Below are positions 2,822-50,500 of a stretch of 64,000 bases of DNA, piece by piece (position 1 is the first letter of the stretch; every line of letters begins with the position of its first letter). Location of the stretch: positions 1-64,000 of the IMG/VR virus record IMGVR_UViG_3300042887_005053, one strand, 5' to 3'. The position numbers and the translations under genes are program-made. The notes under the pieces were generated by a model. It was not told where the DNA came from, ran no database searches, and saw nothing but the letters and a program-made list of their open reading frames with translations.

Positions 2822-3376
2822 ATGAACGATCAAAAAATCTACAAGTATTTTGAATATCTCAAAGAGAATATACAAGATACACCAGAATCTTATGTTGAGT
2901 CTGCTTTGAGAAAGCTGCAAAATAGAATAACTAAAATGTTTTCTTATGATGAAGTTGAAGGTGGTGAAGTAAAAAAGTATGGAGAAGTATCTGATTTATC
3001 CAGAAAAGAAAAAGGTGAAATGAGTTTCAGAGACCTTAATTTGAAGTTAGAAAGTTTAGAGCTATCAAAATATTCAAAAGTTTTTGATAATTTGAAATTG
3101 AAATTCAGTGATGAACAGTTTTTGTATGATATGACATTCACAATAGATTTAAAAGACGCTGTGCCAACTGATCAAACAAAAGATTTTTCAGACAAAGATA
3201 TTGAGAATTGTCAGGTAAAATTTAAGAAATATTCAATAGATAACTTTAATTTAGAAGGCCAAATGATTAAAACTGTCAAAATTGCAGATATAAATGAAGA
3301 AACCATGATTAGTCTAAAAATTGAGTTGGATGAAGACACTGGTTCTGGTGGTGAAGAATTTGAAATCGAATATTAA
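2822..3376 (+). CDS. Hypothetical protein with CTS-like N-terminus (start revised from 2783)
   Basis: MNDQKIYKYFEYLKEN; late motif upstream. Confidence 0.7.
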   Translation: MNDQKIYKYFEYLKENIQDTPESYVESALRKLQNRITKMFSYDEVEGGEVKKYGEVSDLSRKEKGEMSFRDLNLKLESLELSKYSKVFDNLKLKFSDEQFLYDMTFTIDLKDAVPTDQTKDFSDKDIENCQVKFKKYSIDNFNLEGQMIKTVKIADINEETMISLKIELDEDTGSGGEEFEIEY

Positions 3377-4694: not shown

Positions 4695-5954
4695 ATGATT
4701 TCAAAATATCAATCATTCAAATTAGATTCAATTTTAGAATCTTTATTACTTGAAAGTAAATTATATTTTTCAGATAGGCTTTTTTCTTTAATTAGTTCAC
4801 TTCCTTCAAATAAAGTAAAAGACTTATTAATAAATCTTCAGAAATCTGGTAAAGACTTAAATCTTAATCAGAATTACTTTGATTTTTCGGATTCTAAAGA
4901 AGAAGTTACTTTTATTCAAGATAGAAGAGCACAATCTATTTTAGGTGACCAACCAATGAAATTTAAAACTAATTCTAATGCTTCAAGTGCTTATCTTACT
5001 TTCAATAAGAAAAATGATGATACCTATACAAATCAATTAATTTTTGATGATTTGAATTTTGATCCAGAGACTTCGAGTAAACAAATACCAGGTTCAGATG
5101 TTGTCGGAGAAATAGTTGCTGAAACACCATCAAGAAAAACACCTGGTAAAATCTATATTTTATTTAAGTGGAAAAATGGTGATTCGGATGATTTTGTAGT
5201 ATTGAATAAAACAGCTGTTTCAAGTTATGACGATAGAATCGATAGAATTTGGCAATTGACTAAAAATCCAATTAGAATTGGAAGGGCTATTAGGTCTGTT
5301 ATCAATGCAGCTGGTGAAACAGTAACAGATGCTGAGATTGAACAATTTGTTAATGACTATAAGTCTGCTTGGGATATTATGAATGATGCATTTTCTAAGT
5401 TTGATATAGTTAACTCTGATAGTATTGCACATTGGTATTCTAATAATCAGTATGAAGGAGGTGGTCGATCTACTTTAGGAAATTCTTGTATGGCTGAGGT
5501 TGATTCAGATTTTTTTGATATCTATGTAGCTAATACTAGGGTTTGTAGTTTAGTTATTCTTTATGGTGATCAAGGTAAGGTAATTGATGGTAAATTCAAA
5601 GGTACTAAAATTAGAGGAAGAGCTTTACTTTGGAAAACTAATGAAGGTGATATGTTTATGGATAGAATCTATTACAATAACGAATCAGATGTTCAGTTAT
5701 TTAAGAGATTTGCTGAAAAGAATGGTTGGTGGTATAAAAGCTCTCAAGATTCAGATACAGATTTTCAAGCATCAAATGGTTCAAATGCTAAATATCCAAC
5801 TTACACAGTAACATTAGAAGAAGTACACTTTGATAATTATCCTTATGTTGATACAATGTGTTATTTAAATAAATCTACTAGAAAAATCAGTAACAATACA
5901 TCTGATATGAGAGAGGAAATGAGAAGTACCTCTGGATATCTTGACGAGATATAA
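4695..5954 (+). CDS. SCM/GRALLW/MDRIY-family protein, late paralog of 45586-46791
   Basis: LGNSCM, GRALLW, FMDRIY, YPYVDT; TTAATATATA at 4661-4670. Confidence 0.75.
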   Translation: MISKYQSFKLDSILESLLLESKLYFSDRLFSLISSLPSNKVKDLLINLQKSGKDLNLNQNYFDFSDSKEEVTFIQDRRAQSILGDQPMKFKTNSNASSAYLTFNKKNDDTYTNQLIFDDLNFDPETSSKQIPGSDVVGEIVAETPSRKTPGKIYILFKWKNGDSDDFVVLNKTAVSSYDDRIDRIWQLTKNPIRIGRAIRSVINAAGETVTDAEIEQFVNDYKSAWDIMNDAFSKFDIVNSDSIAHWYSNNQYEGGGRSTLGNSCMAEVDSDFFDIYVANTRVCSLVILYGDQGKVIDGKFKGTKIRGRALLWKTNEGDMFMDRIYYNNESDVQLFKRFAEKNGWWYKSSQDSDTDFQASNGSNAKYPTYTVTLEEVHFDNYPYVDTMCYLNKSTRKISNNTSDMREEMRSTSGYLDEI

Positions 5955-6020
5955 TTTTTTTAATAATTTTAAAACTTTTTAATCTACTGTTCCTATACTA
6001 TTAAGTAAGTGACGAAATAG

Positions 6021-6061
6021 TCTGACAATATGTCAGATTTATTTTTTGGCACATCGTTTGA
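6021..6061 (+). promoter_or_regulatory. Palindromic operator plus sigma54-like -24/-12 element upstream of dnaK
   Basis: TCTGACA-ATA-TGTCAGA (6021-6037) and TGGCAC-N5-TTGA (6047-6061). Confidence 0.55.
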
Positions 6062-6088
6062 AATATTAATTGTAAAAAACAATAAATT

Positions 6089-7972
6089 ATGAACAAAAAA
6101 GAGTATGTAATCGGCGTAGATCTTGGTACTACAAATTCATGTCTAGCAGTAATTCAAAGTGGTGAACCCACAGTAATTGCAAACAACGAAGGTAAAAGAA
6201 CTACACCATCAGTAGTTGGATTCACTGAATCTGATAGAAAGATTGGTGATCCTGCAAAAAGACAAGCAGTAACAAATCCTACTAAAACCGTTTATTCTAT
6301 TAAGCGTTTTATTGGTAAAGATTTTAATGTTTGTAAAGATGAGGTTAGGCGTGTTCCTTACTTAGTTGAAAGTACAGGTAATAATGTTCCTGGTGTTAAA
6401 ATCGATGACAAACACTTCACACCACAAGAGATTTCGGCAATGATTCTTCAGAAATTGAAGAAGACTGCTGAAGAGTATCTTGGACAAGAAGTGAAAAAAG
6501 CAGTTATCACCGTTCCGGCTTATTTCGGTGATGCTGAAAGAACTGCTACTATTGAGGCTGGTAAAATTGCTGGTCTTGAAGTAGAAAGAATTATCAACGA
6601 ACCAACTGCCGCGGCTTTGGCATACGGTCTTGATAAAAAGAATACTGACCAAAAAATCATTGTTTATGATTTAGGTGGTGGTACTTTTGATATTTCAGTT
6701 CTAGAAATTGGTGATGGTGTTTTCGAAGTAAAATCTACTGATGGTGATACTCACTTAGGTGGTGACGACTTTGATAATCAAATCATCACTTGGATGGTTG
6801 AAGAATTCAAATCTGAACATTCAATGGATCTATCAAAAGATCCTATGGCTCTTCAGCGTTTGAAAGATGCAGCTGAGAAAGCTAAGATTGAACTTTCAAG
6901 TTCTTCACAGAGTGAAATCAATCTTCCTTACATCACTGCAAAAGACGGAGTACCTCTTCACTTCGTTAAAACTTTAACTAAGGCTAAATTTGAGCAAATG
7001 ATTTCTGGGTTGATTGATAGAACAATCAATTGTTGTAAGTCGGCTCTTAAAAACGCCAAAATCAAAAATGAGCAAATTGACGAGGTAATTCTTGTAGGTG
7101 GTTCAACAAGAGTACCGGCAGTTCAAGAAGCAGTTGAAAAGTTCTTTGGAAAGAAAGCCAATAAATCAGTTAACCCTGATGAAGTAGTTGCCATTGGAGC
7201 AGCTATCCAAGGAGCAGTTTTAGCAGGTGATATTACAGATGTTCTTCTTTTGGATGTAACACCTTTATCACTTGGTATCGAGACCATGGGTAATGTTATG
7301 ACTCGTTTGATTGAGTCTAACACAACTATCCCAACTCGTAAAACTGAGACTTTCTCAACAGCGGCAGATAATCAATCTTCTGTAGAAATTCATGTTCTAC
7401 AAGGTGAAAGACCAATGGCACGAGACAATCGTTCACTTGGTAGATTTCACTTAGATAGTATTATGCCAGCACCAAGAGGTGTACCTCAAATTGAAGTAAC
7501 ACTTGACATTGATGCAAACGGTATTTTGTCTGTTTCAGCAAAAGACAAAGCTACTGGTAAAGAAAACAAAATCCGAATCGAAGGTGGCTCTCAACTTTCA
7601 AAAGAAGAGATTGAAAGAATGAAAGCAGAGGCTGAAGCAAATGCAGAAGCAGATCGTCAAGAAAAGGAAAAAGTTGATAAATTGAATTTGGCTGATTCAT
7701 TGATTTTCCAAACAGAAAAACAAATGAAAGAATTCGATGAAAAAATGACAGAGGAAAATAAAACTGAATTAAATGAAGCTTTAGAACCACTCAAAAAGGC
7801 TTATTCAGAAAAAAACATCGAAGAAATCGAACCAGCAATGGAGAAATTAAACGAGACTTGGTCAAAAATCTCAACTGAACTATATTCAAAGACTTCCGAG
7901 TCTACGAATGAACCTGTAAGTACTGAGGACGGCGGTGCACAGGACGTTCAGTTTGAAGAAGTAAAAGAGTAA
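6089..7972 (+). CDS. dnaK: Hsp70 chaperone
   Basis: [38 protein letters not shown]; full length. Confidence 0.98.
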
Positions 7973-9377: not shown

Positions 9378-9720
9378 TGTTTCAATATTAGAATATTTAG
9401 GAAAAGTTGAAGGAGGTGTTCTTACCTTAGTTTCAATTGTTTATGAATCAAAATATTATGAAGCAACATTTTTTTACAACGAATCAGATATACTACTTAC
9501 AGTATCAGAAGATTTAGAAAAAGAAGTCGGTGACATAAAACTCCATCCTCAATATAAAGAATTACTAAGAGATTTACTAAAAAAAGTAGTTCCTTTTGAT
9601 CAAATGATTGATAGTATTGATCCAGTAAATTTCTCTAGATGGGTTACAGGAGTAATTGAACTACCAAATGACATTGCTGAAAATGTAGATGAGTCAGAAA
9701 TTAAAAAAGACACTAATTAA
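9364..9720 (+). CDS. Hypothetical protein
   Basis: 118-aa coupled ORF. Confidence 0.65.
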   Translation: MAKFDVSILEYLGKVEGGVLTLVSIVYESKYYEATFFYNESDILLTVSEDLEKEVGDIKLHPQYKELLRDLLKKVVPFDQMIDSIDPVNFSRWVTGVIELPNDIAENVDESEIKKDTN

Positions 9721-9727
9721 GTGTCTT

Positions 9728-11065
9728 TTAATCTACAGATTCTTCACTATCAATAAATACAAAATTACTATCATATTTACTTAAAAACTCTCTTGCTGTA
9801 TTCAATTTTGAAGTATTGTCTCTTATCCATTGTTTAGCCATTTCAAATGGTTCACATCTTAAAAGAGCTTTTTCGTAACTCTCTATACTTTTATAAGCAC
9901 TTAGTATTTCTTCTACACTCATCTTCTTTAATTCTTCTGCTTTAATCATATTCATAACAAATGAAAAATTAGAATTATTTTTAATATAACCTAAAGCATA
10001 ATCTTTTCTGGAAATATTAAGGTCTTTGAAGTGTTTATAAGCTTCATTTATTTCTTCAACTTTGTCGTTAATGGATTTTTTGACAATCTTTATTATCTTA
10101 TCGATCCTTTCGTGAGCTTCTTTTTCATCTTCTGGAATTTGTCCTAAGATATCATCAATTTTATCATCTAAAATATATCCAACTATAATATTCTCTCTAT
10201 GAATATCATCTGTTAATAAACCATGTCTTTCCATATACCATGGTGTTTTGATTTTAAAGAAAAAGTCTTTTCCAGATTTATCTTCAGCTTGAACAATAAC
10301 TCCTTCTTTGTCAACTTGTTTAGCAGTTAACTCAATCAAATTATCCAAATCCTTGAAATCATCTTCAAATGGTGCAATACGAATTGTTCCTATTTTATCT
10401 AAATAGTCTTTAATATCTAAATGTTTTCCAGTTTTGTTATCTCTCATTCTCAAAAGAATGAGGTCTTCTTCTAAGTATCTTAAAACGATTCTATTAGCTG
10501 GTGAAACATACTCAAAAATTGCAGTAATGTTATTATTTAAACACCAATCCACAAATTCTTTGATATCATTTCTTTCGCTATAGATTCTATTAATTCCATC
10601 TGCTTGATCATTATCAAATCCCATTTTAGATTTACCTAATACTTTACCGTTTGGTAACTTAATAAATGATGCTATACTACCATCTTCTTTGTTGTTAACA
10701 TATTTGATCTTATAATCTTTAACAATTGAATACATAGAGTCAGTTACTTGATTCAAGTTGAAGAACTTCTCAAGTAATAAAAATCTATTAAATAAAGATC
10801 CGTCTTTATTGAAAACAAAAGTCAATCCTCTCATCTCATAAGCTTTTACTTCTGGTTTGTTTTCTAAAGGTGAAGCAAAATCTTTATGTTGAGCAAGACG
10901 ATAATTGAATACAGAAATATTATATCCATCAATTACATACTTAGATTCATAGAAGGCAGAGTCTTCCTTAGAGCACATCTCAATGCAATCCTCATAAGTA
11001 GGAAGATAGTAAGATGTAATAGAATTAGATTCTTTTAAGTATTGGTTGAATGTGTAGATTTTCAT
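9728..11065 (-). CDS. T4 Rnl1-type RNA ligase with CTS-like N-terminus
   Basis: KFFN, KEDGS (motif I), FEYVSPANRIVLRY, EGVIV, FKIKTPWY; begins MKIYTFNQYLKES. Confidence 0.9.
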   Translation of the reverse strand: MKIYTFNQYLKESNSITSYYLPTYEDCIEMCSKEDSAFYESKYVIDGYNISVFNYRLAQHKDFASPLENKPEVKAYEMRGLTFVFNKDGSLFNRFLLLEKFFNLNQVTDSMYSIVKDYKIKYVNNKEDGSIASFIKLPNGKVLGKSKMGFDNDQADGINRIYSERNDIKEFVDWCLNNNITAIFEYVSPANRIVLRYLEEDLILLRMRDNKTGKHLDIKDYLDKIGTIRIAPFEDDFKDLDNLIELTAKQVDKEGVIVQAEDKSGKDFFFKIKTPWYMERHGLLTDDIHRENIIVGYILDDKIDDILGQIPEDEKEAHERIDKIIKIVKKSINDKVEEINEAYKHFKDLNISRKDYALGYIKNNSNFSFVMNMIKAEELKKMSVEEILSAYKSIESYEKALLRCEPFEMAKQWIRDNTSKLNTAREFLSKYDSNFVFIDSEESVD

Positions 11066-11808
11066 ATTTCTTTTTCAAAAATAGATATGTTAGAAGGACT
11101 AATATTATCTAAGGTATAATATCCTTCCTCATATCTTGGATCTTTAAATAATTTCAAGTTTGTGTTGTTGACTTTAAATATTATCCATTTTGTATTTTTA
11201 TTCCATTTTTTATTTCCTAACTCATAATGATTAATATCTCTTTCTTCTGAGTAATGTAGTTTCATTTGAGGTATTAAATTTTTACAGTCTTGTGCACTTT
11301 TACACAAATAAATTCTATCTATATGTGATGATAGTTTTGATTTGCTTTTTGGAAACAATCCCGATTTTAATATTTTTTTCTCATATTCTTGAATACTTAA
11401 ATGATAAAGTTCACCATCATATTTAGATTCTTCATCGAATTTTGAATCATACTCTATTGTTAGATTTGAAATAATTGATTTTTTTAATTTTATTTCTGAT
11501 TCATCATATTTTTTTAATCTGTTAAAACCATTTGACAATTCCAATAATTGAGAAGATGGAAACCACCCAAATTTGTTTGTCATTAAAGATGATAACATAT
11601 CAAATAAATCATCAATTTTTGAACTGTCTATTGATCTAAAGTTTAAAAATTTTATACTTATAATATCATCTTTTATCTGTCCTTCAACTTCAAATTTTAG
11701 TTTCTTTAATGTATCTAAAGTATATCTTAGTGACCTTTCGCCATCATTAGTTCGTATCAGACCTTCATTAATTGATTGTAAATAGTCTATGAAATTTTTT
11801 ATAAACAT
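11062..11808 (-). CDS. ADP-ribosyltransferase-fold protein resembling the NAD lobe of Tpt1/KptA
   Basis: LYHLS...ILKSGLFP...RIYL...IIFKV...GYYT.DNISP; begins MFIKNFIDYLQSINEG. Confidence 0.6.
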   Translation of the reverse strand: MFIKNFIDYLQSINEGLIRTNDGERSLRYTLDTLKKLKFEVEGQIKDDIISIKFLNFRSIDSSKIDDLFDMLSSLMTNKFGWFPSSQLLELSNGFNRLKKYDESEIKLKKSIISNLTIEYDSKFDEESKYDGELYHLSIQEYEKKILKSGLFPKSKSKLSSHIDRIYLCKSAQDCKNLIPQMKLHYSEERDINHYELGNKKWNKNTKWIIFKVNNTNLKLFKDPRYEEGYYTLDNISPSNISIFEKEI

Positions 11809-11811
11809 GTT

Positions 11812-12504
11812 TTAAACTTTTATAAAATCACACTTGAGTTTTGCTACAATATGATTAGATAGTTTTGATTTGCTAAGATAAGGATTTTCTTTTTCAGCTT
11901 CTCCTTCTTCATAAGTTTTTATGACACAATCTTTACCAAGAGCCCTTTCAATAGAAACATTAACATCTGACGAAAGTAAGTAATTAAATACATCAAATCT
12001 TTTATCATTAGGTTCAGTCAAAATTTCTCTAGCATAAACAACAATTCCTTCTGTTTCATGATACTCTGGATAGACTACTAAGTTTGAGAAGTCTGTATTA
12101 TTATAGTTGAAATACCTGGTCTTCTCAGTTAAGTCTTTTAAGTTTTTAAATTTCCAAGTTTTTCCTTTGATTGTGATATCAGTATTTTGTGTTTCTCTGA
12201 CTTCTATATTGTCGAATTTATCAGTTATTCTATTAATAGCAGTTCTTAACTCAGATTGATACCACTGGTATTCTTTCCAGTCCAAAGTGTGTTTCTTTTC
12301 AAGTGAAATAAATATTCTATCACCAAATTGATAAACATCATTGTCTCTGACTTTTTTCAATAGATCATATACATTTTTATTGAAGTTTTCAAACGCATTA
12401 TCATTGCAGAAAAAATCTTGATTGATCTGAAATTTATAACCAGCATCCTCAAAGTGAATTAAGGCATCTTCAATTTTATCTTTTAATTCTTGATTAAGAA
12501 GCAT
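11812..12504 (-). CDS. Hypothetical protein (start revised from 12543)
   Basis: TTTATATATA 4 nt before ATG 12504; the longer start runs through a terminator. Confidence 0.65.
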   Translation of the reverse strand: MLLNQELKDKIEDALIHFEDAGYKFQINQDFFCNDNAFENFNKNVYDLLKKVRDNDVYQFGDRIFISLEKKHTLDWKEYQWYQSELRTAINRITDKFDNIEVRETQNTDITIKGKTWKFKNLKDLTEKTRYFNYNNTDFSNLVVYPEYHETEGIVVYAREILTEPNDKRFDVFNYLLSSDVNVSIERALGKDCVIKTYEEGEAEKENPYLSKSKLSNHIVAKLKCDFIKV

Positions 12505-12515
12505 AGAGTATATAT

Positions 12516-12541
12516 AAAAAAAGACTCGATAAAATCGAGTC
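12516..12541 (-). terminator. Intrinsic terminator
   Basis: GACTCGAT-AAA-ATCGAGTC with T run on the minus strand. Confidence 0.8.
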
Positions 12542-12542
12542 A

Positions 12543-12842
12543 TTAAAATTTTTCAGATGATTTAGCTTTAGTAGTATCTGGTTTCGATTTGAAAACTGTT
12601 TTATAAACTATAACTGTATCATGTTTATTATCATAAAGTAATTTCAACTTTTTATTTTCGTCTTGAAGTGTTTTGATAGTAGAATCTTTTTGATGTAAAA
12701 TACATTCGGTTGATGGTAATTCTGGTTTATCAGATGATTGAACTTTGAAAAATACTGCTGTAGAGAATAATAGAAATGAAATAAACCCTATTGTTGAGAT
12801 TATCATTAAGGTTTTAGACATTGATTTGTTAGTTTTTGACAT
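12543..12842 (-). CDS. Single-TM coiled-coil protein
   Basis: N-terminal TM helix; TATATTTG early box at 12859-12866. Confidence 0.65.
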   Translation of the reverse strand: MSKTNKSMSKTLMIISTIGFISFLLFSTAVFFKVQSSDKPELPSTECILHQKDSTIKTLQDENKKLKLLYDNKHDTVIVYKTVFKSKPDTTKAKSSEKF

Positions 12843-12893
12843 AGTAGATATATTTTTACAAATATAAAAATAAAAAATTAATAATAAAAATTA

Positions 12894-13785: not shown

Positions 13786-13955
13786 ATTTTTTCGAGTTTC
13801 ATCAACCGATCAATTCTGTAGAATTGTTTTTTAAGAATTTCACCAAGTTTTTTTGAATCAAAATCAAAATTTCGATCCTTCAAATTAGAAGGAGTTGAAT
13901 TAATTTTTGACTTTAATTCGCCTAGCTTTGAATTAAATTCGTTGGTATTATCCAT
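13764..13955 (-). CDS. Small protein with C-terminal tag
   Basis: DRLMKLEKIW near the C-terminus. Confidence 0.55.
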   Translation of the reverse strand: MDNTNEFNSKLGELKSKINSTPSNLKDRNFDFDSKKLGEILKKQFYRIDRLMKLEKIWKKINN

Positions 13956-14493
13956 TTGATTTCAGAATATCACCAATAGTTAAATCAACTAAGGTAGACC
14001 TACCGAAAATTAAAACTTCGACTTTTACTTTATTCTTATCCATATCAATCCAATCAACAGTTCCTTTGAACTTAGCAAAAGGTCCAGTTACGATTTCAAC
14101 AGTTTCACCAACGATGAATTGAGTTTCAATAACATTTTTATTACTTTCTTTCTCACCGATCATTCTATCTACTTCACTTTGTTTTAAGATAATTGCTACA
14201 CCTTTATTGTCTCTAAGGATGTTAGTTGCGCCGTTTGTAGATTTAACTAAGTGAGCTACCTTATCGATAGAATTAGTTTGAACAAAAACATATCCAGGAT
14301 AAAGAACTTTTTCTTTTTGAACCTTTTTGCCTTCTTTGATATCAATTGTTAATTGAGTTGGAATTAAAAAGACAACATCTTCACCATACTCTCTTTTCAT
14401 ATCAGACTTTAATCTTTCTGAAACTGATTTTTCTCGATTGTTTTGTACTTTAACTGTGTACCAATTTTTAGCTTTTACTTCTGTTTGAATCAT
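13948..14493 (-). CDS. nusG: Transcription elongation/antitermination factor
   Basis: NGN (WYTVKV...YPGYVFV) plus KOW (GETVEIVTGPFAKFKG...IFGR). Confidence 0.92.
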   Translation of the reverse strand: MIQTEVKAKNWYTVKVQNNREKSVSERLKSDMKREYGEDVVFLIPTQLTIDIKEGKKVQKEKVLYPGYVFVQTNSIDKVAHLVKSTNGATNILRDNKGVAIILKQSEVDRMIGEKESNKNVIETQFIVGETVEIVTGPFAKFKGTVDWIDMDKNKVKVEVLIFGRSTLVDLTIGDILKSNG

Positions 14494-34252: not shown

Positions 34253-35056
34253 TTAATACTCAATTCTTTCTACATTCTTTAGTTTCACATCATAATACTC
34301 ATTATCATATTGAACTGTTATGTTGTCAAATTCGTCAATACTAACTGGTTTTAGTGGTTCTTTTGGATCATTATCTGGTAAATCTTCAACAACTGTTGCA
34401 TAAATAATTCCATTATCATCTATACACTTGATTATATCTTCTTGTGTTATGTTATTCACTTTGAAATCTTCAAATAACATAATATATTTAAGTGATGCTT
34501 TCTCAACGATTTTGTGTCTATTTTTAATATTATCAAGTAAAGACTCGATTTCTCTAACAATTTTATTGTGTGTATTGGTTAGTCTACGATTTGATTTCAA
34601 GTTAGTGATGATGAAATTAGTTTCGATATAATATCTACTTCTAAATCCAGCTGAAGCGGCGTACATATCTGATATATTTTGAAGTCTATCACAAAGTTTA
34701 ATAGTTAAGGCATCATCACTCATATAAGTCATTTTGTTGAGTAAATAATTTGCTTTTCCTTGTTTAGTTATTTCACTTTCATCTGATGTTAGTTCTTGTA
34801 CAAGTTTTGCTACTCTACCACCAAACTTAGATTTTATTAGGTCAAATGTCACAAAGTCAACATCTTCTAAAGTATCGTGAAGAATTGCAGCTGTTCCTAA
34901 GGTTGCTCTAGTATCGAATCTTTTGAGAATACTAAATACCTTAACAACATGACCTTCGAAGTATGTAGTTGATGTGAATCTTCTTCTCATACCTTTGTGA
35001 GCATCTTTTGAGAACTTCCAAGCTTTCTGTTCTAAAGGTGTTAAAGTTATTGGCAT
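34253..35056 (-). CDS. RelA/SpoT-type HD hydrolase (small alarmone hydrolase, Mesh1-like) plus C-terminal domain
   Basis: AHKGMRR, H, AAILHDTLED, ELT, IKLCDRLQN; no synthetase domain. Confidence 0.85.
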   Translation of the reverse strand: MPITLTPLEQKAWKFSKDAHKGMRRRFTSTTYFEGHVVKVFSILKRFDTRATLGTAAILHDTLEDVDFVTFDLIKSKFGGRVAKLVQELTSDESEITKQGKANYLLNKMTYMSDDALTIKLCDRLQNISDMYAASAGFRSRYYIETNFIITNLKSNRRLTNTHNKIVREIESLLDNIKNRHKIVEKASLKYIMLFEDFKVNNITQEDIIKCIDDNGIIYATVVEDLPDNDPKEPLKPVSIDEFDNITVQYDNEYYDVKLKNVERIEY

Positions 35057-35060
35057 AGGT

Positions 35061-35161
35061 TATATATTAAATTACTTACTAAGAAAGTTAATAATACTGT
35101 ATCGTAATCATTATTTCAGTTTTATATATAGTGTATATATAAAAAATATAGCTTATTTTTG
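35061..35161. promoter_or_regulatory. Divergent promoter region
   Basis: Minus TTAATATATA 35061-35070; plus TTTATATATA 35121-35130 and early TATTTTTG 35154-35161. Confidence 0.6.
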
Positions 35162-35165
35162 TAGT

Positions 35166-36344
35166 ATGAAAATTAAAGATTATCAAGGTTTTCTTGAAGA
35201 GTTAAGTAATAAAGATATGTATGAAATTATTCCTAATTCAGTTAAAGAATTGAATAACATTTTCAAAAAATCTGGAAAGAAACTTTATGTAGTTGGTGGT
35301 GCAGTCCGTGATTTTCTAACAGGAGAAAAACCAAAAGACTTTGATCTTGCTACAGACGCACTTCCAGATGAAGTGCTAGAAATTCTTGGTCACAAATATA
35401 GAACTAACTTACAGGGTAAGGCTTTTGGTGTGGTAGTTGTTTATACTGAAGATGAACCAGCAGGAATGGAAATTGCAACTTTTAGATCAGATGTTACAAA
35501 AGGTAGAAATCCAGAAGTTAAATTAGGAGTTACAATAGAAGATGATGTCAAAAGAAGAGATCTAACTTATAACTCACTTTTTTATGACTTAGATAAAAAA
35601 GAAATTGTAGATTTAGTTGGTGGTGTTAAAGACTTAGAAGATAAAATAACTAGAATGGTTGGAGATCCGTTGGAAAGAATTGAAGAAGATTCTTTGAGGA
35701 TTTTAAGAGCATTCCGTTTTTCTGCTAGATACGGAACACCTTTGGATGAATCTTTAATTGAATCTATAAAAAAGAGAAAGCAGTTACAGAATGTCGATCC
35801 GGAATCTGGTGAAATGAAAAGAATTTCACAAGAAAGAATTTGGGAAGAAATGAAAAAAGCTTACTATCAAGCTAAGTCTTATGTTCACTACTTGGAATTT
35901 TTTAATTACTTTGACATGTGGGAAGAAGTTTTCCCAGGAGCTATTATTAATAGAGATATTGTAGAATGTCATGAACTTGTTACTTATATAGCTAACTTAT
36001 TCAAATTTGATAATAAGTCAGATTTAGAAAGCAGATTAGTAATAAACTATAAAATTGAAAGTGATATTGCTTCAAAAGTTGTTTTCTTGATAAATCTACT
36101 TGATCTAAGAACTGACAATGCTTTTGACTTATATAAACAAAAAACAAGGTCTAACTGTCAAACATCTACCATAATTGATTGGTTAGATGCTAATAACATT
36201 CATAGAAAAATATTTATAAGATTTATTGATTATGCTCCGAGTGTTTCTGCTGAAGAATTAATGAGTCAAGGCTTCAAAGGTAAAGAACTTGGTCAAAAGA
36301 TTAAAGATTTAGAGATTAAAAAATTCAAAGATTTATTAAGATGA
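35166..36344 (+). CDS. cca: Class II tRNA nucleotidyltransferase (CCA-adding enzyme family)
   Basis: VGGAVRD, DFDLAT, RRDLTYN, EDSLRILRAFRF, ISQERI; begins MKIKDYQGFLEE. Confidence 0.85.
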   Translation: MKIKDYQGFLEELSNKDMYEIIPNSVKELNNIFKKSGKKLYVVGGAVRDFLTGEKPKDFDLATDALPDEVLEILGHKYRTNLQGKAFGVVVVYTEDEPAGMEIATFRSDVTKGRNPEVKLGVTIEDDVKRRDLTYNSLFYDLDKKEIVDLVGGVKDLEDKITRMVGDPLERIEEDSLRILRAFRFSARYGTPLDESLIESIKKRKQLQNVDPESGEMKRISQERIWEEMKKAYYQAKSYVHYLEFFNYFDMWEEVFPGAIINRDIVECHELVTYIANLFKFDNKSDLESRLVINYKIESDIASKVVFLINLLDLRTDNAFDLYKQKTRSNCQTSTIIDWLDANNIHRKIFIRFIDYAPSVSAEELMSQGFKGKELGQKIKDLEIKKFKDLLR

Positions 36345-36601
36345 AAAAATTCACAGAGTCAGTAGACGACTCCGGTACAAGAGATATTGATGGAACTTGG
36401 CTACCAGAAACGCCACATGCTAAGCTTAGAAACAAGTTAGGTACTTTTTGGACTTTATCTCAGTTGATTTCGGATAAACAAAGATTTCAAACACTTATTT
36501 CATCTGATACTGGAAAAGATTTGATTGTTGATACTGCTAATCAGTGTGAGTTGAACAAAGAAAGTATTTTAGAACTAATCAAAATAATCGAAGAATTATG
36601 A
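36341..36601 (+). CDS. Small protein with CTS-like N-terminus
   Basis: MKKFTES; ATGA overlap with cca. Confidence 0.65.
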   Translation: MKKFTESVDDSGTRDIDGTWLPETPHAKLRNKLGTFWTLSQLISDKQRFQTLISSDTGKDLIVDTANQCELNKESILELIKIIEEL

Positions 36602-37338
36602 TTCATAGAGTTGAGTATTTAAAAGATATTTTAGGTAGTAATTATATTGGAATTAATGTACCGATTCAAATTGTGAGTCCATTTCTAGATAGACTTAAAA
36701 ATGTTTTAGGTGATGAATATGATGTTTATGTTAAGAATCAACAAAACAGAGATAATGGTCACTATCATATAACTGTTATCAATGTAATGGATTATAATCG
36801 ACTTTCGAAAGAAATGGGTATAGATAAATTTATTAACTCACTAGAGTCAGTTTTTGATTTTGATTTTGATGATGTTCAGTTTTTAGGACTTGGTAAAGCA
36901 CAAAAACAAGACAATAAATCGTATTTTATTGTAGTTCGTTCTGAAAAGTTACAAGAAGTCAGAAGAAAATATGGATTAAGTGAACAAGATTTTCATGTTA
37001 CTTTAGGTTTCAAGTGGAAAGATGTCTTTGGAGTAAGGAAAAATGAAATTATTAAAGAAAGTGAACCTTTCTTAAAACTTTTAAAAAAGTCATATTATAA
37101 CAATCACGAAACTTTTGATTTTGTGAAAGAAATTGAAAATTTTGAAGGTGATTCTGAGCAAGAAATTGAACCAATAGAAATCAGAGAAACTACTGCTACA
37201 TTTCGTAATGGCAAAAATGACTACATAACAGTTTCTTTGATCGATAATGAATTTAGAATCACTAATAAGTATCAAGATTTTAGTAATAAACCAATTCTAT
37301 CACATACATTAATTTCGAAAAAATTTTTAGATATATAA
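36598..37338 (+). CDS. 2H phosphoesterase
   Basis: Two HxT motifs: YHITV and FHVTLG. Confidence 0.85.
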   Translation: MIHRVEYLKDILGSNYIGINVPIQIVSPFLDRLKNVLGDEYDVYVKNQQNRDNGHYHITVINVMDYNRLSKEMGIDKFINSLESVFDFDFDDVQFLGLGKAQKQDNKSYFIVVRSEKLQEVRRKYGLSEQDFHVTLGFKWKDVFGVRKNEIIKESEPFLKLLKKSYYNNHETFDFVKEIENFEGDSEQEIEPIEIRETTATFRNGKNDYITVSLIDNEFRITNKYQDFSNKPILSHTLISKKFLDI

Positions 37339-47562: not shown

Positions 47563-50500
47563 TTATACTTTAGTTAAATGATAACTAATCGTTAAGTTAA
47601 AAGAAGCATTTAATCCACTACCAACTGAACTTGGTAGTGTTGGATTTCCATAAGTTATTTGTGAAGAAAACACCTGAGCCGTTCCACTTCTAATTACTGG
47701 ACTTTGGCCTTTCACGAGTGTTGATCTTGGATCATTTGGTGAGAACTCACCAAATCGAACAGCTTTATAAACTCTACTCTGTGTAGAGGTTAACATAAAA
47801 TCTACAATTTGTGGTTTATTACTTACACCATCCCCAATCATTATTTGTTCATTAGTTGAGTAACCAGTTGCTCCAGCTCCAAATACCTCTACTATACACT
47901 CGTCTATAACAACAACTGAATCTATTGGAACATCAATATCAAGACTTACTGGATTATCTCCTAAATTTTGAATTATTGTATCATCTAAATATTTTGTTAC
48001 TATTTTTTTCTCGTTGAACTGATCTAAATTAATTTTGCTAACATCTTTTTTAATTAACGGTTTAGCATTTGTGATAACATAACCAGTATTAGGTGAACCT
48101 TTTATAGGTGTTATTTCTTGTGTTATTGGGACTGATACTCCATCAACATTACAATCAACTGCCAACCACTCAAAACCAAGGAAATTATATTCTTCGACAC
48201 TCTCTACTACTCCTCCAATTTCACTACACTTTTCAATGGTCTCTTCCCATTCATCTTGTGATATAAAGCCAGAATAATCTTCATTCGGATTATAACCAGT
48301 GTTTGTGCCAATTAATAATTTAGCTTCTGATACTTTTGCTTTTGGTTGATATTTTTTGAATTTTGTATTAAATTCAGTTGGTTCACCTTTTGAGCCTTTA
48401 GTTTGAAGTTTCGTAAACTGAAACTCCCAAACTCTTTGTGGTTGTGCAGATAAAGATAAGCTTTGTGTAGATCCACCTTCATATCTTGCGATAAATGTTG
48501 GATTTTCAGCTGTGTAATCCATTCCAGCATATACTCTTTGAAAAGATCTAGATGATGTGTATCCTACATATATCACTGGTGATTTTAGTTTGTTAGGTGT
48601 ACCAAAAGTTATATAACTATCAGAGTGTAGATACATTCTATCATAATAAAGATCGTCATATTTAATTAATATCGGTAATCTCATACTACTATTTTCACCA
48701 AAATAAGAGAAATTTTGTTCCTTATCACCAGTGTTTAACATACCAACACCATTAACTGGTTGTGAGTCAATAGAACTTATACGACCAATCACCATGATAC
48801 TTTGAGTACCGCCTTCTCCATGAACAGATCTAGTTAAATTAACAGTTAAAGCTTTAGCAAAATCACCTTCAGCATTAATTAAGAAATTAGAATCTAATGA
48901 CCAGTCTTGAGAAATACTAGTTCTATCGTTTAATATTACAATTTCTCTCTTACCTAATCTTGTTAGATCTCCGGTTTTTCTAATTGATACATTGTTATAA
49001 GTAGTAAAGTCTCCAGTGACTAATATTCTGTTTTCAAAAATTCCAGTTCCACTTGGAGCTTTAGTTATATCAAAAACATTTCCATTAAATCCATCTCCAA
49101 AATTTTGACTATGTGGAGTATCATAATCACCTTCTAATCTAATTATACGATTATAAGTAACTCCGTTATATTGAGTGAAATTGCCACCGATTATTAAAGT
49201 ATTGTTTAGTGTGTCTTCATAAATAGTATTTACTCTACCATTAAATCCACTTGCTGTAGTGTTTAATGTTCCATCAACATTAAGAACAATAAATTTATCA
49301 CAAGAGATTCCATCAAATGATGTAAAGTCACCACCAACAAATATCTTTGTTTTATCCTCACTTAACTTAATAGTAAATACTTTATTATTGAAACCAGTAC
49401 CAATATTAGTAAGAAAAGTACTATCAATTGCTCCGGTTGAGTTGACTCTAACAATTCTATTTACAGTTGTAAAAGATAAATCATTAGGTGATTGTTTCCA
49501 TCCAGTAAATTCACCAGCTATGATATAATCGTCAGGATCAGGTGAGTTATTCAAAACAACTATTGATCTAACTGGTCCATTCACTCTCATTTCAAATGTG
49601 TTATCTATAGTTCCACTATCATTAGAGTTATTGATTCTTATTAAATAAGGTATATTCTCTTCATCGTACTGTTCAAATAATCCACCAACTAAAATTCTAC
49701 CACTGTTATCTGTAACTACAGTATGAATAATTTGACCAGGTAAATCATTTACATCACTACTAAATGATTCCGATACAAAGTAATCAGAGTAAAAATTAAT
49801 ATTTCTTGTGCCATCGTTAAGTAGCTTTGATAAAAACCCAACACTAAATGTTGTTCCTCCGTTAGCAGTCACACCTGGATACCCACCACCTAAAATTACT
49901 TCACTGTTGAACTCAGTTATTACTGATAGATGATAATCTTCACCTTCATCCCAACCAGTATGTAGTTCAACGCCACCTGGACCTTCATAAATTGGGTATC
50001 CACCTGGTTTATAACCAATAACAGTCCAAAGACCAGATTCCAAGTCAGGTACACATTGATAATTACTACAAACAAAACCGTTAGGACATAAATCATTCTC
50101 TAGTGAACAACCAAGTCCAGATACTAATGCAGAAGTTATAACTTCTCTTATGCAGTACCCATCAACACAAACATATCCAACAGGACACTCATCGTCTGCA
50201 TTACAGCTTAACACTTCATAGTCTTCACCTTCATCCCAACCAGTATGTAGTTCAACACCACCTGGACCTTGATAAATAGGATAACCACCTGGCTTTTGAC
50301 CGATTTCTACCCATAATCCGGATGCTAAGTCAGGTATACACTCACCATCTAAACAATAAAAACCTTCTGGACAACCGCCATCGATTTGACAAGCAAGGCC
50401 TGAACTCAAATTAGAAGTAATAATTTGTAGAACACAGTATCCACCAACACATACATATCCACTTGGACAATCTGAATTAATCTCACATTCTAAAATTGTT

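Follow-up and report, generated by a model that had tools for sequence, protein, structure and literature searches.

A mobile gene for a predicted Tpt1-like ADP-ribosyltransferase-fold protein occupies a variable slot next to RNA ligase 1 in a huge freshwater phage

Background

A jumbo-phage pathway that combines an RNA ligase, a 2H enzyme and KptA has already been described (PMC7824862, PMC9503650). In Tpt1, NAD+ is contacted by a His-Gly-Thr motif, by the Gly/Met backbone and by a distal Arg, and the catalytic tetrad includes an Arg-His-Arg set that holds the junction 2'-phosphate (PMC10622864). In phage T4, capsid-targeted proteins start with a propeptide roughly 10 residues long, the capsid-targeting sequence (CTS), in which positions 4 and 7 direct the targeting and cleavage takes place at an [LI]-x-E site (PMC9026906). 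Among mobile genes, free-standing homing endonuclease genes have been found in “fractured genes” (Dassa et al. 2009, PMC2677866), and the EDxHD family, with I-Bth0305I, offers a further homing endonuclease for comparison (PMC3239194).

The family of predicted ADP-ribosyltransferase (ART) proteins described here shares with Tpt1/KptA (PF01885) the LYH-x-[ST] motif, the G-L-x-P turn, an Arg before the second strand, and a G-aromatic-aromatic strand followed by I-x-P-x-x-I, and, like KptA, it recurs beside 2H phosphoesterases and RNA ligases (PMC9503650, PMC7824862). Unlike Tpt1/KptA, its members have a ferredoxin-like domain instead of the winged-helix RNA lobe, carry a leader, an insert (K156-H162) and an additional helix (179-196), and are multi-copy and mobile; they also co-exist with canonical Tpt1 in the same genomes. 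As with the packaged or early ADP-ribosyltransferases Alt, ModA and ModB of T4, these are phage ARTs with paralogous copies in plastic genome regions, and their leader resembles the T4 capsid-targeting propeptides, but the T4 enzymes belong to the R-S-E clade, possess a catalytic Glu and act on proteins (ModB additionally RNAylates), and the family protein is only one third of the size of Alt. DarT, which ADP-ribosylates thymidine or guanosine in ssDNA, is likewise a small H-Y-type ART but, in contrast to the family, has an essential Glu, a substrate-binding ARTT loop and a DarG partner. Finally, the niches of the ART genes (split-intein recA and polB, recA and nrd neighbours) and their presence/absence polymorphism are like those of free-standing homing endonucleases, although the family lacks both a nuclease fold or motif and a NUMOD/HTH DNA-binding region.

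Organization of the locus

The locus comes from a huge freshwater phage, represented by a 204-kb record (IMG/VR IMGVR_UViG_3300042887_005053) that covers about 35% of the genome, so that absences from this record are weak evidence. The window is the stretch of 64,000 nucleotides at positions 1 to 64,000 of the record. Within it, a minus-strand unit (12541-9705) consists of three genes, for a 230-aa protein, a 248-aa ART-fold protein and RNA ligase 1 (Rnl1), between terminator-like hairpins:

12523..12541, minus strand: intrinsic-terminator-like hairpin (8-bp stem with 4 GC pairs, and a T-run) that delimits the unit on its 5' side
12509..12517, minus strand: promoter-like TTATATATA motif, 4 nt ahead of the ATG at 12504
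11812..12504, minus strand: 230-aa conserved protein, start set by homologues; synteny with Rnl1 in relatives L028-L031
11062..11065, minus strand: ATGA overlap of the ART stop (TGA) and the Rnl1 start (ATG), 4 nt in ORF coordinates
9728..11065, minus strand: T4-type RNA ligase 1, 445 aa (PF09511, phrog_562, TIGR02308; KEDG motif I)
9705..9729, minus strand: terminator-like hairpin that immediately follows the Rnl1 stop and closes the unit at its 3' end

The initial ORF calls on the minus strand were 9728-11065 (445 aa), 11062-11808 (248 aa) and 11812-12543. The last of these starts too early: its first 13 codons are a spurious extension because they are a read-through of the hairpin 12541-12523, which terminates the upstream gene for a 99-aa membrane protein, and the true start is at 12504, where the homologues begin. 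This start follows a TAATATATA-N4-ATG motif at 12515-12509. ATATATA is 26-fold enriched in the 40 nt upstream of genes (70/195), and TAATATATA-N3-6-ATG precedes 32 genes. The motif also stands ahead of tail-fibre-like, HD-phosphohydrolase and exonuclease genes, which leaves the “late” label that a preliminary description of this DNA had given to the operon unsupported.

The 230-aa protein is the constant upstream partner of Rnl1 in the related phages (L028-L031). The N-terminal domain of its AF2 model (pLDDT 88.4) is ferredoxin/S6-permutant-like (Z 8.3); structure comparison gave no match for the C-terminal half, and searches of Pfam, PHROG and NCBIfam gave none for the protein. The ligase matches PF09511 (77.2 bits, cut-off 28.3) and phrog_562 (E 2e-57), whereas its scores against TIGR02308 (E 4e-38, 131 bits) and T4_Rnl1_C (21.9) are under the equivalog cut-off of 242 and the cut-off of 27, respectively. 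Both the assignment of the ligase to Rnl1 and its overlap with the ART-fold gene, already noted in the preliminary description, are confirmed by these data.

Other RNA-repair genes of the phage

Two further genes of the window bear on RNA repair:

35166..36344, plus strand: CCA-adding enzyme (PolyA_pol head, CCA NTase), with an N-terminal leader
36598..37338, plus strand: 2H-SAK phosphoesterase (E 3.8e-24), which adjoins ART homologues in L043-46

Like the T4 Rnl1-Pnkp and jumbo-phage RNA-repair tool-kits, the window contains Rnl1, a CCA-adding enzyme, a 2H-SAK enzyme and an HD phosphohydrolase. Unlike in those tool-kits, no Pnkp, RlaP or SAK-HAD, and no canonical Tpt1, were detected in the 204-kb record, and several of the enzymes have in common an N-terminal leader that is undescribed for those enzyme families. 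A 2H enzyme at 36598 and the lack of a polynucleotide kinase next to Rnl1 had been pointed out before, and both hold; across the 204 kb, about 35% of the genome, no AAA_33/Pnkp-type match exceeded the cut-off. The P-loop protein at 57616, tentatively suggested earlier as the kinase of the pathway, is AAA_28/nucleoside-kinase-like, and because its AAA_33 match reaches only 15 bits, its identification as a polynucleotide kinase is unsupported.

Domain architecture of the ART-fold protein

The 248-aa protein starts with a short leader, continues with a ferredoxin-like domain that varies, and ends in a conserved ART domain:

11764..11808, minus strand: leader, residues 1-15, T4 capsid-targeting-sequence-like, ending I-N-E|G
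11434..11742, minus strand: N-domain, residues 23-125, alpha-beta-beta-alpha-beta-beta, ferredoxin/PilO/S6-permutant-like, variable
11062..11433, minus strand: minimal ADP-ribosyltransferase domain, residues 126-248 and stop, Tpt1/KptA NAD+-lobe-like

In the AF2 model (pLDDT 85; about 62 for residues 1-20), the N-domain (residues about 20-125) occupies the place of the RNA lobe of Tpt1. Structurally, it comes closest to an S6 permutant and to PilO/EpsM (Z up to 7.6), and winged-helix is not among the matches. Within the family, pairwise identity is 37% in the N-domain versus 53% in the ART domain. The N-domain is slightly acidic (net charge -2.4), which is unusual in nucleic-acid binders, and its alignment contains no conserved Arg or His.

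The ART domain, in which H136, G150, K158, H162, R165, Y167, C175 and G229 are invariant, aligns over residues 124-245 with KptA 9ld3_A (VIA-align Z 11.4, rmsd 2.4 over 90 residues), followed by mouse TRPT1 (Z 9.2) and Runella Tpt1 (Z 8.2), with lower scores for pertussis toxin S1 (Z 8.1) and DarT (Z 7.4, 19% identity). The best 18 Foldseek matches of the model are all Tpt1/KptA, and the lists from the fold searches are dominated by ARTs (Tpt1, DarT, Arr, PARP and diphtheria-like toxins); in BFVD, a DarT match was found with E 3e-4. The top KptA structural matches are DNA complexes. Comparison of the family with eight phage Tpt1 sequences by hhalign yielded a probability of 88.5% (E 2.7e-6). 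A likeness to Tad6 was dismissed (TM 0.42/0.30, not meaningful).

The core is a split beta-sheet of the H-Y type, with H136 in strand 134-139 and Y167 in strand 166-169. ARTs of the H-Y-[EDQ] clade have a catalytic Glu, Asp or Gln where strand 5 begins. In the family, the corresponding position before the invariant G229 is occupied by E, D, N, S, K or G in an alignment of 43 sequences, so that the catalytic Glu typical of ARTs that modify proteins or bases is missing, as it is from Tpt1. H136-L-S138, G150..P153 and R165 take the places of the Tpt1 residues that contact NAD, the register of R165 relative to the Tpt1 Arg being approximate, and H136, S138, G150, P153 and R165 are all invariant or nearly so. 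Insertions include the Lys/His-rich K156-H162 segment and the long helix 179-196. Judged by the predicted structure together with the sequence comparisons, the ART domain and the NAD+ lobe of Tpt1/KptA are homologous, in agreement with the preliminary description, in which the NAD-binding lobe was the only part of Tpt1 that could be recognized in an ART fold.

The protein lacks, however, the RNA lobe of Tpt1 and three of the four Tpt1 catalytic residues (Arg-His-Arg). It had no Pfam match at E ≤ 1, PF01885 included, and this model was silent across the 204-kb record, though positive in controls and in two relatives with complete genomes (G002 and G003). Given the lack of a PF01885 match, the different fold in place of the RNA lobe and the missing Arg-His-Arg, we reject the possibility that the protein is a Tpt1 orthologue. 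The missing lobe holds the residues that bind the 2'-phosphate and drive step 2, an observation that speaks against Tpt1-type chemistry. There was also no match to the Pfam ART-toxin, ADPrib_exo_Tox, Alt or DarT models, no nuclease domain or motif by Pfam and PHROG, and no LAGLIDADG or restriction fold among the structural neighbours.

Leader peptides

The N-termini of Rnl1 (residues 6-12) and of the ART protein (residues 6-15) contain a pattern of the aromatic-x-x-aromatic-[ILV]-x-E type, which the N-terminus of the CCA-adding enzyme (35166) also fits. The pattern occurs in 9 of 216 N-termini compared with 11 of 2,686 interior 20-aa windows, so that the CTS-like leaders of Rnl1 and the ART protein, noticed previously, are substantiated as a sequence feature. 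In Rnl1, the leader accounts for 12 residues (nt 11065-11030) of about 20 extra N-terminal residues in all and, given that the Rnl1 family profiles begin at residue 24, is an extension ahead of the profile. Every member of the ART family carries a CTS-like leader, which in subfamily A4 is nearly identical to that of the Rnl1 homologues, and the sequence G-L-I-K-T just after the putative cleavage site is strongly conserved as well. In relatives, the leader is also borne by a LigT-like 2H enzyme; the 2H-SAK enzyme at 36598 is without it.

In view of its resemblance to the T4 CTS, the leader may have a role in packaging in this phage. A prohead protease of the gp21 type (S77 type) was not detected in the 204-kb fragment, and the signal in relatives is weak (E 1e-5, below the cut-off); this, like the conservation of G-L-I-K-T, speaks against such a role. 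Because the leader is common to them, the ART protein, Rnl1, the CCA-adding enzyme and, in relatives, the LigT-like 2H enzyme probably have one destination.

Cassette replacement at the Rnl1 locus

Comparison with syntenic relatives delineates a replaced segment:

11038..11806, minus strand: swapped cassette, the ART gene and the first 28 nt of Rnl1, without DNA homology to syntenic relatives

In blastn comparisons with relatives L030 and L028, homology extends over 12540-11807 at 72-77% and restarts, at 80%, at 11037 (L030) or 11008 (L028). In L028-L031, the ART slot is filled by an unrelated 143-aa ORF, and Rnl1 is 68-69% identical in close relatives; a third variant, on a contig in run X12, departs from the present sequence precisely at 11807. 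The GC content of the ART gene is 23.6%, and its GC3 15.7%, versus 27.7-28.3% and 20.6-21.6%, respectively, for the neighbouring genes. Contigs of other lake studies (X4 record 17, X8 record 29) have the ART-Rnl1 arrangement intact. As the sequence comparisons indicate, this is a conserved operon, in which the genes for the 99-aa and 230-aa proteins are followed by a variable slot and Rnl1, and in which ART here replaces the 143-aa ORF. The tie between ART and Rnl1 in this phage thus appears to be recent and facultative. We considered and rejected a conserved functional pairing of the two, because the relatives keep Rnl1 with the 143-aa ORF instead. In four other large phage records, a family member and Rnl1 are more than 100 kb apart.

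A large family of mobile genes

Searches for homologues yielded 1,661 clusters (50% identity) at E ≤ 1e-3, of which 950 are found at E ≤ 1e-10, and the family is unmatched by any Pfam, PHROG or NCBIfam model. By these comparisons, the proteins, each about 240 aa long and with the three-part architecture, form a very large family in huge phages that has so far no annotation. The number of copies per genome was 9, 3, 2, 1 and 1. The genome with nine copies (G003, complete) also encodes canonical Tpt1, and neither Rnl1 nor 2H-SAK was found in it; the other complete genome (G002) has canonical Tpt1 in an island with Rnl1 and 2H-SAK at 235-254 kb, and its ART family member at 431 kb.

Among about 26 contexts, a non-random and partly related set of loci, about 21 have no RNA-repair neighbour, and RNA-end-healing neighbours occur in five different, independent arrangements, one of which is the present locus with Rnl1. 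In the closest relatives (L017/L040, 82-84% identity), ART lies directly upstream of the orthologue of the CCA-adding enzyme, with 2H-SAK close. RlaP is beside or near the family member in L014/15. In L043-46 (40% identity), 2H-SAK adjoins with a start/stop overlap and an Rnl2-like gene is 3 kb off, and in L047, a LigT-like (Acb1-like) 2H gene adjoins, again with an overlap.

Other family members are located between the split-intein halves of RecA (L003) or of PolB, at the YGD|TDS motif (L019); PolB is uninterrupted, that is, an empty site, in the genome studied here (G000) and in L016. Additional positions are directly after intact recA (L008, L033), behind a split nrd large subunit (L006), between the small and large subunits of nrd (L053/54) and next to T5orf172 ORFs (L011/L032). 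The split-intein slots and the recA and nrd neighbours are not explained by RNA repair. NAPRTase neighbours the family member in L016, and tandem copies adjoin an Acb3-like anti-defence gene in L048. At three sites, there is presence/absence polymorphism with sharp borders. Taken at the level of gene content and sequence, the ART gene is a mobile accessory cassette.

Possible functions

The preliminary description proposed a dispersed fungal-style pathway, in which the 2H enzyme would open 2',3'>P to 2'-P, a kinase would phosphorylate the 5'-OH, Rnl1 would seal, and the ART protein, as a functional Tpt1, would strip the junction 2'-phosphate. The Tpt1-like NAD lobe without a catalytic Glu, the ATGA coupling to Rnl1, the 2H-SAK and CCA-adding genes in the same window, the adjacency of ART and 2H genes three more times elsewhere and the lack of canonical Tpt1 or Pnkp in the 204 kb are all consistent with this scheme, of which the NAD pocket and the RNA-healing neighbours stand. 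The part that does not stand is the equation of the ART protein with Tpt1, from which it differs in the missing RNA lobe and Arg-His-Arg (PMC10622864). Furthermore, two complete genomes encode canonical Tpt1 as well, in one case clustered with Rnl1 and 2H-SAK, the syntenic relatives have Rnl1 without ART, and the 204 kb, about 35% of the genome, yielded no polynucleotide kinase. T4-type Rnl1 seals 2'-OH/3'-OH ends, and a 2'-phosphate is not a known requirement for it. We regard this pathway as unlikely, and consider similarly improbable the fallback suggested at the same time, an Alt-like effector that would be packaged and, on entry, ADP-ribosylate proteins of the host (RNA polymerase, or factors of translation or defence), with paralogues diversified by target. 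The leader on all family members and the arms-race behaviour of the family do fit such an effector: there are up to nine paralogues per genome, tandem copies adjoin the Acb3-like gene in L048, and high mobility is combined with a fast-evolving putative specificity domain, as in T4 internal proteins (PMC9026906). The catalytic type does not, being H-Y without Glu/Gln, with His instead of Arg on strand 1, as opposed to the R-S-E of Alt, ModA and ModB; Pfam ART-toxin and Alt models gave no match, R-S-E toxins are structurally weaker matches than Tpt1, and the leader is shared by two enzymes, Rnl1 and the CCA-adding enzyme, that are not effectors acting on the host.

The distribution of the genes could also be read as that of a nuclease-free homing element, whereby a Tpt1/DarT-like ART would mark either a base or a nick phosphate in the DNA of ART-less alleles and recombinational repair would copy the gene in. 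If true, this would account for the split-intein slots, the recA and nrd neighbours and the freshly swapped Rnl1 cassette, and the position next to Rnl1 would be one more invaded site beside a conserved gene. The occupation of the homing-endonuclease slot in the RecA and PolB split inteins, with empty PolB sites elsewhere, the recA, nrd and T5orf172 neighbours, the sharp-bordered polymorphism at three sites, and the presence of DarT (Z 7.4) among the structural neighbours, with DNA complexes as the best KptA matches, point in this direction. However, the family has no nuclease domain or motif by Pfam and PHROG and lacks the Glu that DarT requires, its acidic N-domain is unlike DNA-binding domains, homing genes do not typically come in tandem arrays of paralogues or with a packaging-like leader, and insertions are simply tolerated in split-intein slots and beside conserved genes. 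To our knowledge, there is no case of homing by ADP-ribosylation, and we find this explanation distinctly improbable. Very unlikely, in our view, is a protein that has NAD+ or ADP-ribose as a ligand and no transferase activity, such as a sponge that captures NAD-derived immune signals, a hydrolase of these signals, or an NADase or NAD+ phosphorylase (RES-like). Such a function would agree with a minimal ART domain that has a conserved nucleotide pocket and no catalytic Glu, with the NAPRTase (L016), Acb3-like (L048) and Acb1-like 2H (L047) neighbours and with the multiple paralogues, but the invariant cluster of Arg, His and Lys residues (K156, K158, H162, R165) together with Y167 suggests catalysis, NAD+ degradation would harm a phage that invests in NAD salvage elsewhere, and evidence of sponge-like oligomers was not found.

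The reading that we favour, while considering it somewhat short of probable, is that of a mobile accessory enzyme that is predicted to use NAD+ in the manner of Tpt1 and probably shares its destination with Rnl1 and the CCA-adding enzyme. Such an enzyme would bind NAD+ and transfer ADP-ribose onto a phosphate oxygen; the likely acceptor would be a nucleic-acid end or a 2'-phosphate that remains when host defences cleave tRNA, and the variable N-domain would select the substrate. The recurrent neighbouring 2H enzymes might make the phosphate or remove the by-product, ADP-ribose cyclic phosphate. For the leader-bearing enzymes of this phage and its relatives, the destination would most simply be the prohead, for delivery with the DNA.

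A three-gene unit on the minus strand

Three ORFs fill positions 9728-12543 on the minus strand and, together with terminator-like hairpins at both borders and a promoter-like motif ahead of position 12504, they plausibly mark a three-gene transcription unit, at the coordinates proposed in the preliminary description:

12541-12523, minus strand: terminator-like hairpin, 3' of the stop of the upstream 99-aa membrane-protein gene
12509-12517, minus strand: promoter-like motif TTATATATA, 4 nt ahead of the ATG at 12504
11812-12504, minus strand: 230-aa protein (ORF called from 12543; homologues begin at the Met at 12504)
11062-11808, minus strand: ART ORF, the middle gene, whose TGA overlaps the ATG of Rnl1 as ATGA
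9728-11065, minus strand: Rnl1, T4-type RNA ligase 1 (PF09511, 77 bits against a cut-off of 28.3; phrog_562, E 2e-57; TIGR02308, E 4e-38; KEDG motif I)
9729-9705, minus strand: second terminator-like hairpin, 3' of the Rnl1 stop

The assignment of the ligase to Rnl1 and the ATGA overlap thus stand as originally described, and the 13 surplus codons of the ORF called from 12543 are explained by translation of the upstream hairpin. The same description had called the unit late, which found no support because the promoter-like motif also precedes non-structural genes. Upstream of genes in the full 204-kb record (G000), its core, ATATATA, shows 26-fold enrichment, and TAATATATA-N3-6-ATG occurs at 32 genes of this record (e.g. 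sites 17601, 47563, 70383 and 88692), and the motif-bearing genes include those for a collagen-like tail fibre, an HD phosphohydrolase and an exonuclease. Given that TAATATATA lies only 3-6 nt before start codons, the respective mRNAs would be leaderless or near-leaderless.

Several other features of the window were recorded. The tail-fibre matches (phrog_5073, E 4e-17) come from a 1,570-aa ORF at 47563-52275, and a gene for a NusG/KOW-like transcription factor is located at 13948-14493. A TAnnTTTG-like element (TATATTTG) precedes the 99-aa gene at ~12861-12868 and gives a hint that the host may belong to the Bacteroidota. An RNA-repair cluster spans 34253-37338 and includes the 2H enzyme already noticed at 36598, now assigned to 2H-SAK:

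34253-35056, minus strand: HD metal-dependent phosphohydrolase (phrog_990, E 1.5e-22)
35166-36344: CCA-adding enzyme, carrying a leader that resembles the T4 capsid-targeting sequence (CTS)
36598-37338: 2H-SAK phosphoesterase, without this leader

A divergent family with the NAD+ lobe of Tpt1

The ART protein has no match in Pfam, PHROG or NCBIfam, and a PDB sequence search returned chance matches alone. A word-indexed search recovered 205 relatives, nearly all of 235-255 aa, and an exhaustive profile search recovered 1,661 clusters (defined at 50% identity) at E<=1e-3, of which 950 were found at E<=1e-10, almost all of the same length and with full-length coverage; a metagenome scan yielded 6 loci, all short. 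The family is "hypothetical" in all sources consulted, none of which gave it a name. Neither P0281 nor other longer members yielded a Pfam domain. A single clear fusion was seen in the family, a 528-aa ORF of LR756501 (162271-162714; locus L058, 1903-3489), which contains an internal ART domain (profile positions 75-248) between flanks without a Pfam match.

In the AlphaFold2 model (mean pLDDT 85, from a 43-sequence alignment), the ART domain comprises residues 124-248. Its best structural match in VIA-align is KptA of T. kodakarensis (Z 11.4, rmsd 2.4 A over 90 residues, 17% identity), with mouse TRPT1 at Z 9.2 and Runella Tpt1 at Z 8.2, so that pertussis toxin S1 (8.1), scabin (7.9) and DarT1 (7.4) rank below Tpt1/KptA. 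The best 18 Foldseek matches are Tpt1/KptA without exception, and a profile-profile alignment against Tpt1 from phages (eight sequences) gave a probability of 88.5% (E 2.7e-6). The ART fold with a Tpt1-like NAD+ lobe, originally proposed from the sequence, is therefore borne out by structure prediction.

Three Tpt1 motifs could be matched by eye to the family, namely, LYHGT to LYHLS, YVHLS to RIYLC, and G-V-W-L-T..V-P-x-x-Y-I to G-Y-Y-T-L..I-x-P-x-x-I. In Tpt1, the His and Thr of His-Gly-Thr contact the adenosine ribose of NAD+, the backbone of Gly/Met contacts the adenine, and a distal Arg contacts the diphosphate (PMC10622864). The counterparts of these residues, H136, S138, G150, P153 and R165, are invariant or nearly so, that is, the NAD pocket is intact. 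Where other ARTs have their catalytic Glu, the family, like Tpt1, shows no conservation. Ahead of the second strand of the domain is a Lys/His-rich loop with low pLDDT in which K156, K158 and H162 are invariant.

A different domain in place of the Tpt1 RNA lobe

The substrate lobe of Tpt1 is missing. Residues 20-123 are modeled by AlphaFold2 as an alpha-beta-beta-alpha-beta-beta domain, unlike the winged-helix RNA lobe of Tpt1, and structure comparison places this N-domain near an S6 circular permutant, PilO/EpsM and designed folds of the ferredoxin type, with Z of at most 7.6. The Arg-His-Arg residues with which Tpt1 binds the 2'-phosphate and drives its second step belong to the RNA lobe (PMC10622864), and the N-domain contains no conserved Arg or His in the family alignment. 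It is also the faster-evolving part of the protein (mean pairwise identity of 37%, against 53% for the ART domain) and is slightly acidic, whereas the ART domain is basic.

Several other identities were considered and rejected. The order of secondary structure elements, a G-L-I-x-x-x-D motif and [ED]-x-K in the last strand raised the idea of a LAGLIDADG or PD-(D/E)xK nuclease, but the N-domain is acidic and has neither a Pfam match nor such a structural neighbor. An EDxHD/Vsr-type homing endonuclease differs in both architecture and motifs, and the similarity to Tad6, a Thoeris anti-defence protein, in Atlas (TM 0.42/0.30) is too weak. A look-alike score of 0.86 to Arr-ms counts as no more than a lead. 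The 230-aa protein, which also has an S6-permutant-like N-domain, was considered as a paralogue and dismissed, with an hhalign probability of 0.1% between the two families. The two proteins share SKSKLS-x-HI (8 of 9 residues, pairwise E 0.07) between ART residues 155-163 (11322-11348) and the C-terminal region of the 230-aa protein (11848-11874); this sequence is conserved across the ART family but not across the 230-aa family, and is probably shared by chance between otherwise unrelated proteins.

A common N-terminal leader

The T4 CTS corresponds to the first ten residues of IPIII, of which positions 4 and 7 are involved in targeting, and positions 8 and 10 in processing (PMC9026906). Rnl1 of the window and of loci L028 and L030 from related phages starts with M-K-x-x-x-aromatic-x-x-aromatic-[IL]-K-E, followed by G or S, and ART-family proteins start with the same pattern, either in a short form (subfamily A4) or three residues longer and ending in I-N-E|G. 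The leader is also present in the CCA-adding enzyme (35166) and its orthologues, in a LigT-like 2H protein (L047) and in several unrelated ORFs, and is missing from 2H-SAK, Rnl2, canonical Tpt1, RlaP and RecA. Within G000, the pattern was found in 9 of 216 N-termini and in 11 of 2,686 interior windows, and the leader of Rnl1 precedes the family profiles, which begin at residue 24. This N-terminal enrichment and the extension beyond the profiles show the modular tag to be genuine, and the leaders on ART and Rnl1 noted previously survive this comparison.

By analogy with T4, the tag might be a packaging signal; a gp21-type protease domain was weakly detected in two relatives and was not detected within the G000 fragment, which represents ~35% of the genome. 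Further unrelated leader-bearing ORFs are candidates for a set of proteins targeted together:

G000 110598-111014, 111870-112724, 119840-121000, 154861-156237 and 179117-179692; window 2822-3376

Among these, the ORF at 179117 presumably has the leader closest to that of T4 IPIII.

A cassette slot in the Rnl1 operon

The coupling of ART to Rnl1 is real but not conserved. In four loci of related phages (L028-L031), Rnl1 is 68-69% identical to that of the window, and the 99-aa membrane protein, the 230-aa protein and, on the opposite strand, the p118, p83 and T5orf172 genes are all kept, but the slot between the 230-aa gene and Rnl1 is occupied by a 143-aa ORF unrelated to ART. Upstream, these loci encode an Rnl2-like ligase (PF09414), where the window has instead genes for a 4HBT thioesterase and a dCMP deaminase. 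The conserved block, (Rnl2-like)-99-aa membrane protein-230-aa protein-variable slot-Rnl1, is located as follows:

Window, 11812-12842, without the Rnl2-like gene
L028, 3883-7537
L030, 3952-7380

The 230-aa protein, which belongs to no known family, is a constant companion of Rnl1. DNA homology with L030 and L028 extends over 12540-11807, ending at the ART start codon, and restarts at 11037 in L030 (28 nt into Rnl1) and at 11008 in L028. A related contig in the lake metagenome run X12 departs from the window exactly at 11807. These sharp borders, the alternative ORF and the divergence in X12 identify the slot as a cassette site. The G+C content of the ART gene is 23.6%, compared to ~28% in its neighbors (GC3 15.7% and ~21%, respectively). 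Contigs of two other studies span ART and both neighbors intact, so the joining of ART to Rnl1 is genuine and specific to a lineage; in four large relatives, more than 100 kb separate Rnl1 from the ART-family member. The ART gene thus marks a variable cassette slot within a conserved Rnl1 operon, a testable proposition.

Genomic locations in other phages

The 204,336-nt IMG/VR virus record of which the window represents the first 64 kb is ~35% complete according to CheckV, so that the phage genome is probably roughly half a megabase in size. The G+C content of the window is 28-30%, and ORFs of at least 100 aa called with translation table 11 cover 91% of it, making an alternative genetic code unnecessary. 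Near-identical DNA was found in 20 lake/freshwater metagenome runs from 11 studies. Megablast against phages produced no match; the closest database phages are LR756501-3, "uncultured phage" genomes of 642-735 kb, with Lak phages more distant.

The ART family is mobile. About 26 contexts were examined, and since these loci are few in number, related in part and not a random sample, statistics on adjacency give no more than an indication. Some neighbors are RNA-repair genes: ART (82-84% identical) immediately precedes the gene for the CCA-adding enzyme in L017/L040, where 2H-SAK is close by; upstream of RlaP in L014/15; preceded by CCA-adding enzyme and 2H-SAK genes with a start/stop overlap in L043-46, where an Rnl2-like gene follows 3 kb on; and overlapped and followed by the leader-bearing LigT/Acb1-like 2H gene (5705-6247) in L047. 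Among DNA-metabolism genes, ART directly follows intact recA (L008, i.e. LR756502, and L033) or a split nrd large subunit gene (L006), or separates the nrd gene of the small subunit from that of the large one (L053/54). It is also found beside T5orf172 ORFs (L011, L032), two genes after NAPRTase (L016), near a PARP-like gene (L041), among sugar epimerases (L007) and, in two copies, directly upstream of an Acb3-like CBASS inhibitor (L048, 6533-7348, E 2e-37).

In L003 (4994-7428), RecA breaks off after ..NHIYM and is followed by an intein N-part that starts with Cys (TPNH block), the ART ORF and an intein C-part ending in ..SHN|S, and the same layout of split intein and ART is found inside the YGD|TDS motif of PolB in L019 (5388-7983); PolB is uninterrupted in L016 and in G000 (~112.7-113.8 kb), where the empty site lies in a YADTDS region at about 113.6 kb. 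Such a "fractured gene" is the normal seat of a free-standing homing endonuclease (PMC2677866), whose place is filled here by an ART-family ORF. The occupation of homing-endonuclease niches by a gene without a nuclease domain is itself testable.

The related genome G003 (complete, 640 kb) contains 9 ART-family copies, G001 contains 3, LR756501 contains 2, and G002, LR756502 and G000 contain 1 each. The paralogues of G003 are located at 176.7, 188.6-192.0, 252.0-256.0 and 541.7 kb, and four of them are interleaved with sugar epimerase/dehydratase genes.

Possible functions of the ART proteins

The preliminary description raised the idea of a dispersed fungal-style heal-and-seal pathway; its strict form, in which the ART protein substitutes for Tpt1, is one that we consider unlikely. 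The NAD+ lobe resembles that of Tpt1; the 2'-phosphate-binding residues have no conserved equivalents. In G003, canonical Tpt1 (E 4e-51) is encoded at ~6 kb, and neither Rnl1 nor 2H-SAK was found in this complete genome; G002 encodes canonical Tpt1, Rnl1 and 2H-SAK, all inside 235-254 kb, and its ART-family member at 431 kb. The P-loop protein at 57616-58173, adjoining a family-2 glycosyltransferase and suggested earlier as the kinase of the pathway, is AAA_28-like (NadR/nucleoside-kinase-like) only, which does not support a polynucleotide kinase. Nor is the pathway idea new, given that jumbo-phage tRNA repair combining RNA ligases, 2H enzymes, KptA, RlaP, CCA-adding enzymes and SAK phosphatases has been published (PMC7824862, PMC9503650).

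An Alt-like injected effector that modifies proteins, the other suggestion made at the outset, would be compatible with the leader, but the fold is closest to Tpt1/KptA and lacks the Glu of other ARTs, and we regard this possibility as similarly improbable. A selfish homing enzyme directed at DNA would suit the fractured genes and the sharp cassette borders; with no nuclease domain in evidence, its chances appear slim. A protein that binds NAD or ADPR as a ligand and lacks transferase activity would also retain the conserved pocket, and seems to us the least probable of these readings.

Our preferred interpretation, itself tentative, is that the ART protein would transfer ADP-ribose to a phosphate, with the variable N-domain choosing the substrate and the tag routing the protein to the same destination as Rnl1 and the CCA-adding enzyme. 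Phosphate is suggested as the target by the Tpt1-like H-Y combination without Glu and by the recurrence of 2H enzymes alongside; 2H enzymes produce 2'-phosphates and remove ADP-ribose cyclic phosphate (PMC9503650). The tag common to ART and the unrelated RNA-repair enzymes Rnl1, CCA-adding enzyme and a 2H enzyme makes it conceivable, and testable, that huge phages supply tRNA repair as a finished kit by injection.

The novelty lies in a divergent, tagged and mobile family of Tpt1-like ARTs that, for the purpose of annotation, deserves its own profile. To our knowledge, Tpt1 is the sole enzyme that removes a phosphate by ADP-ribosylating it. More than 1,600 clusters keep the NAD+ lobe of Tpt1 with the substrate lobe exchanged and, if active, these proteins would reveal other uses of this chemistry in phage-host conflicts.
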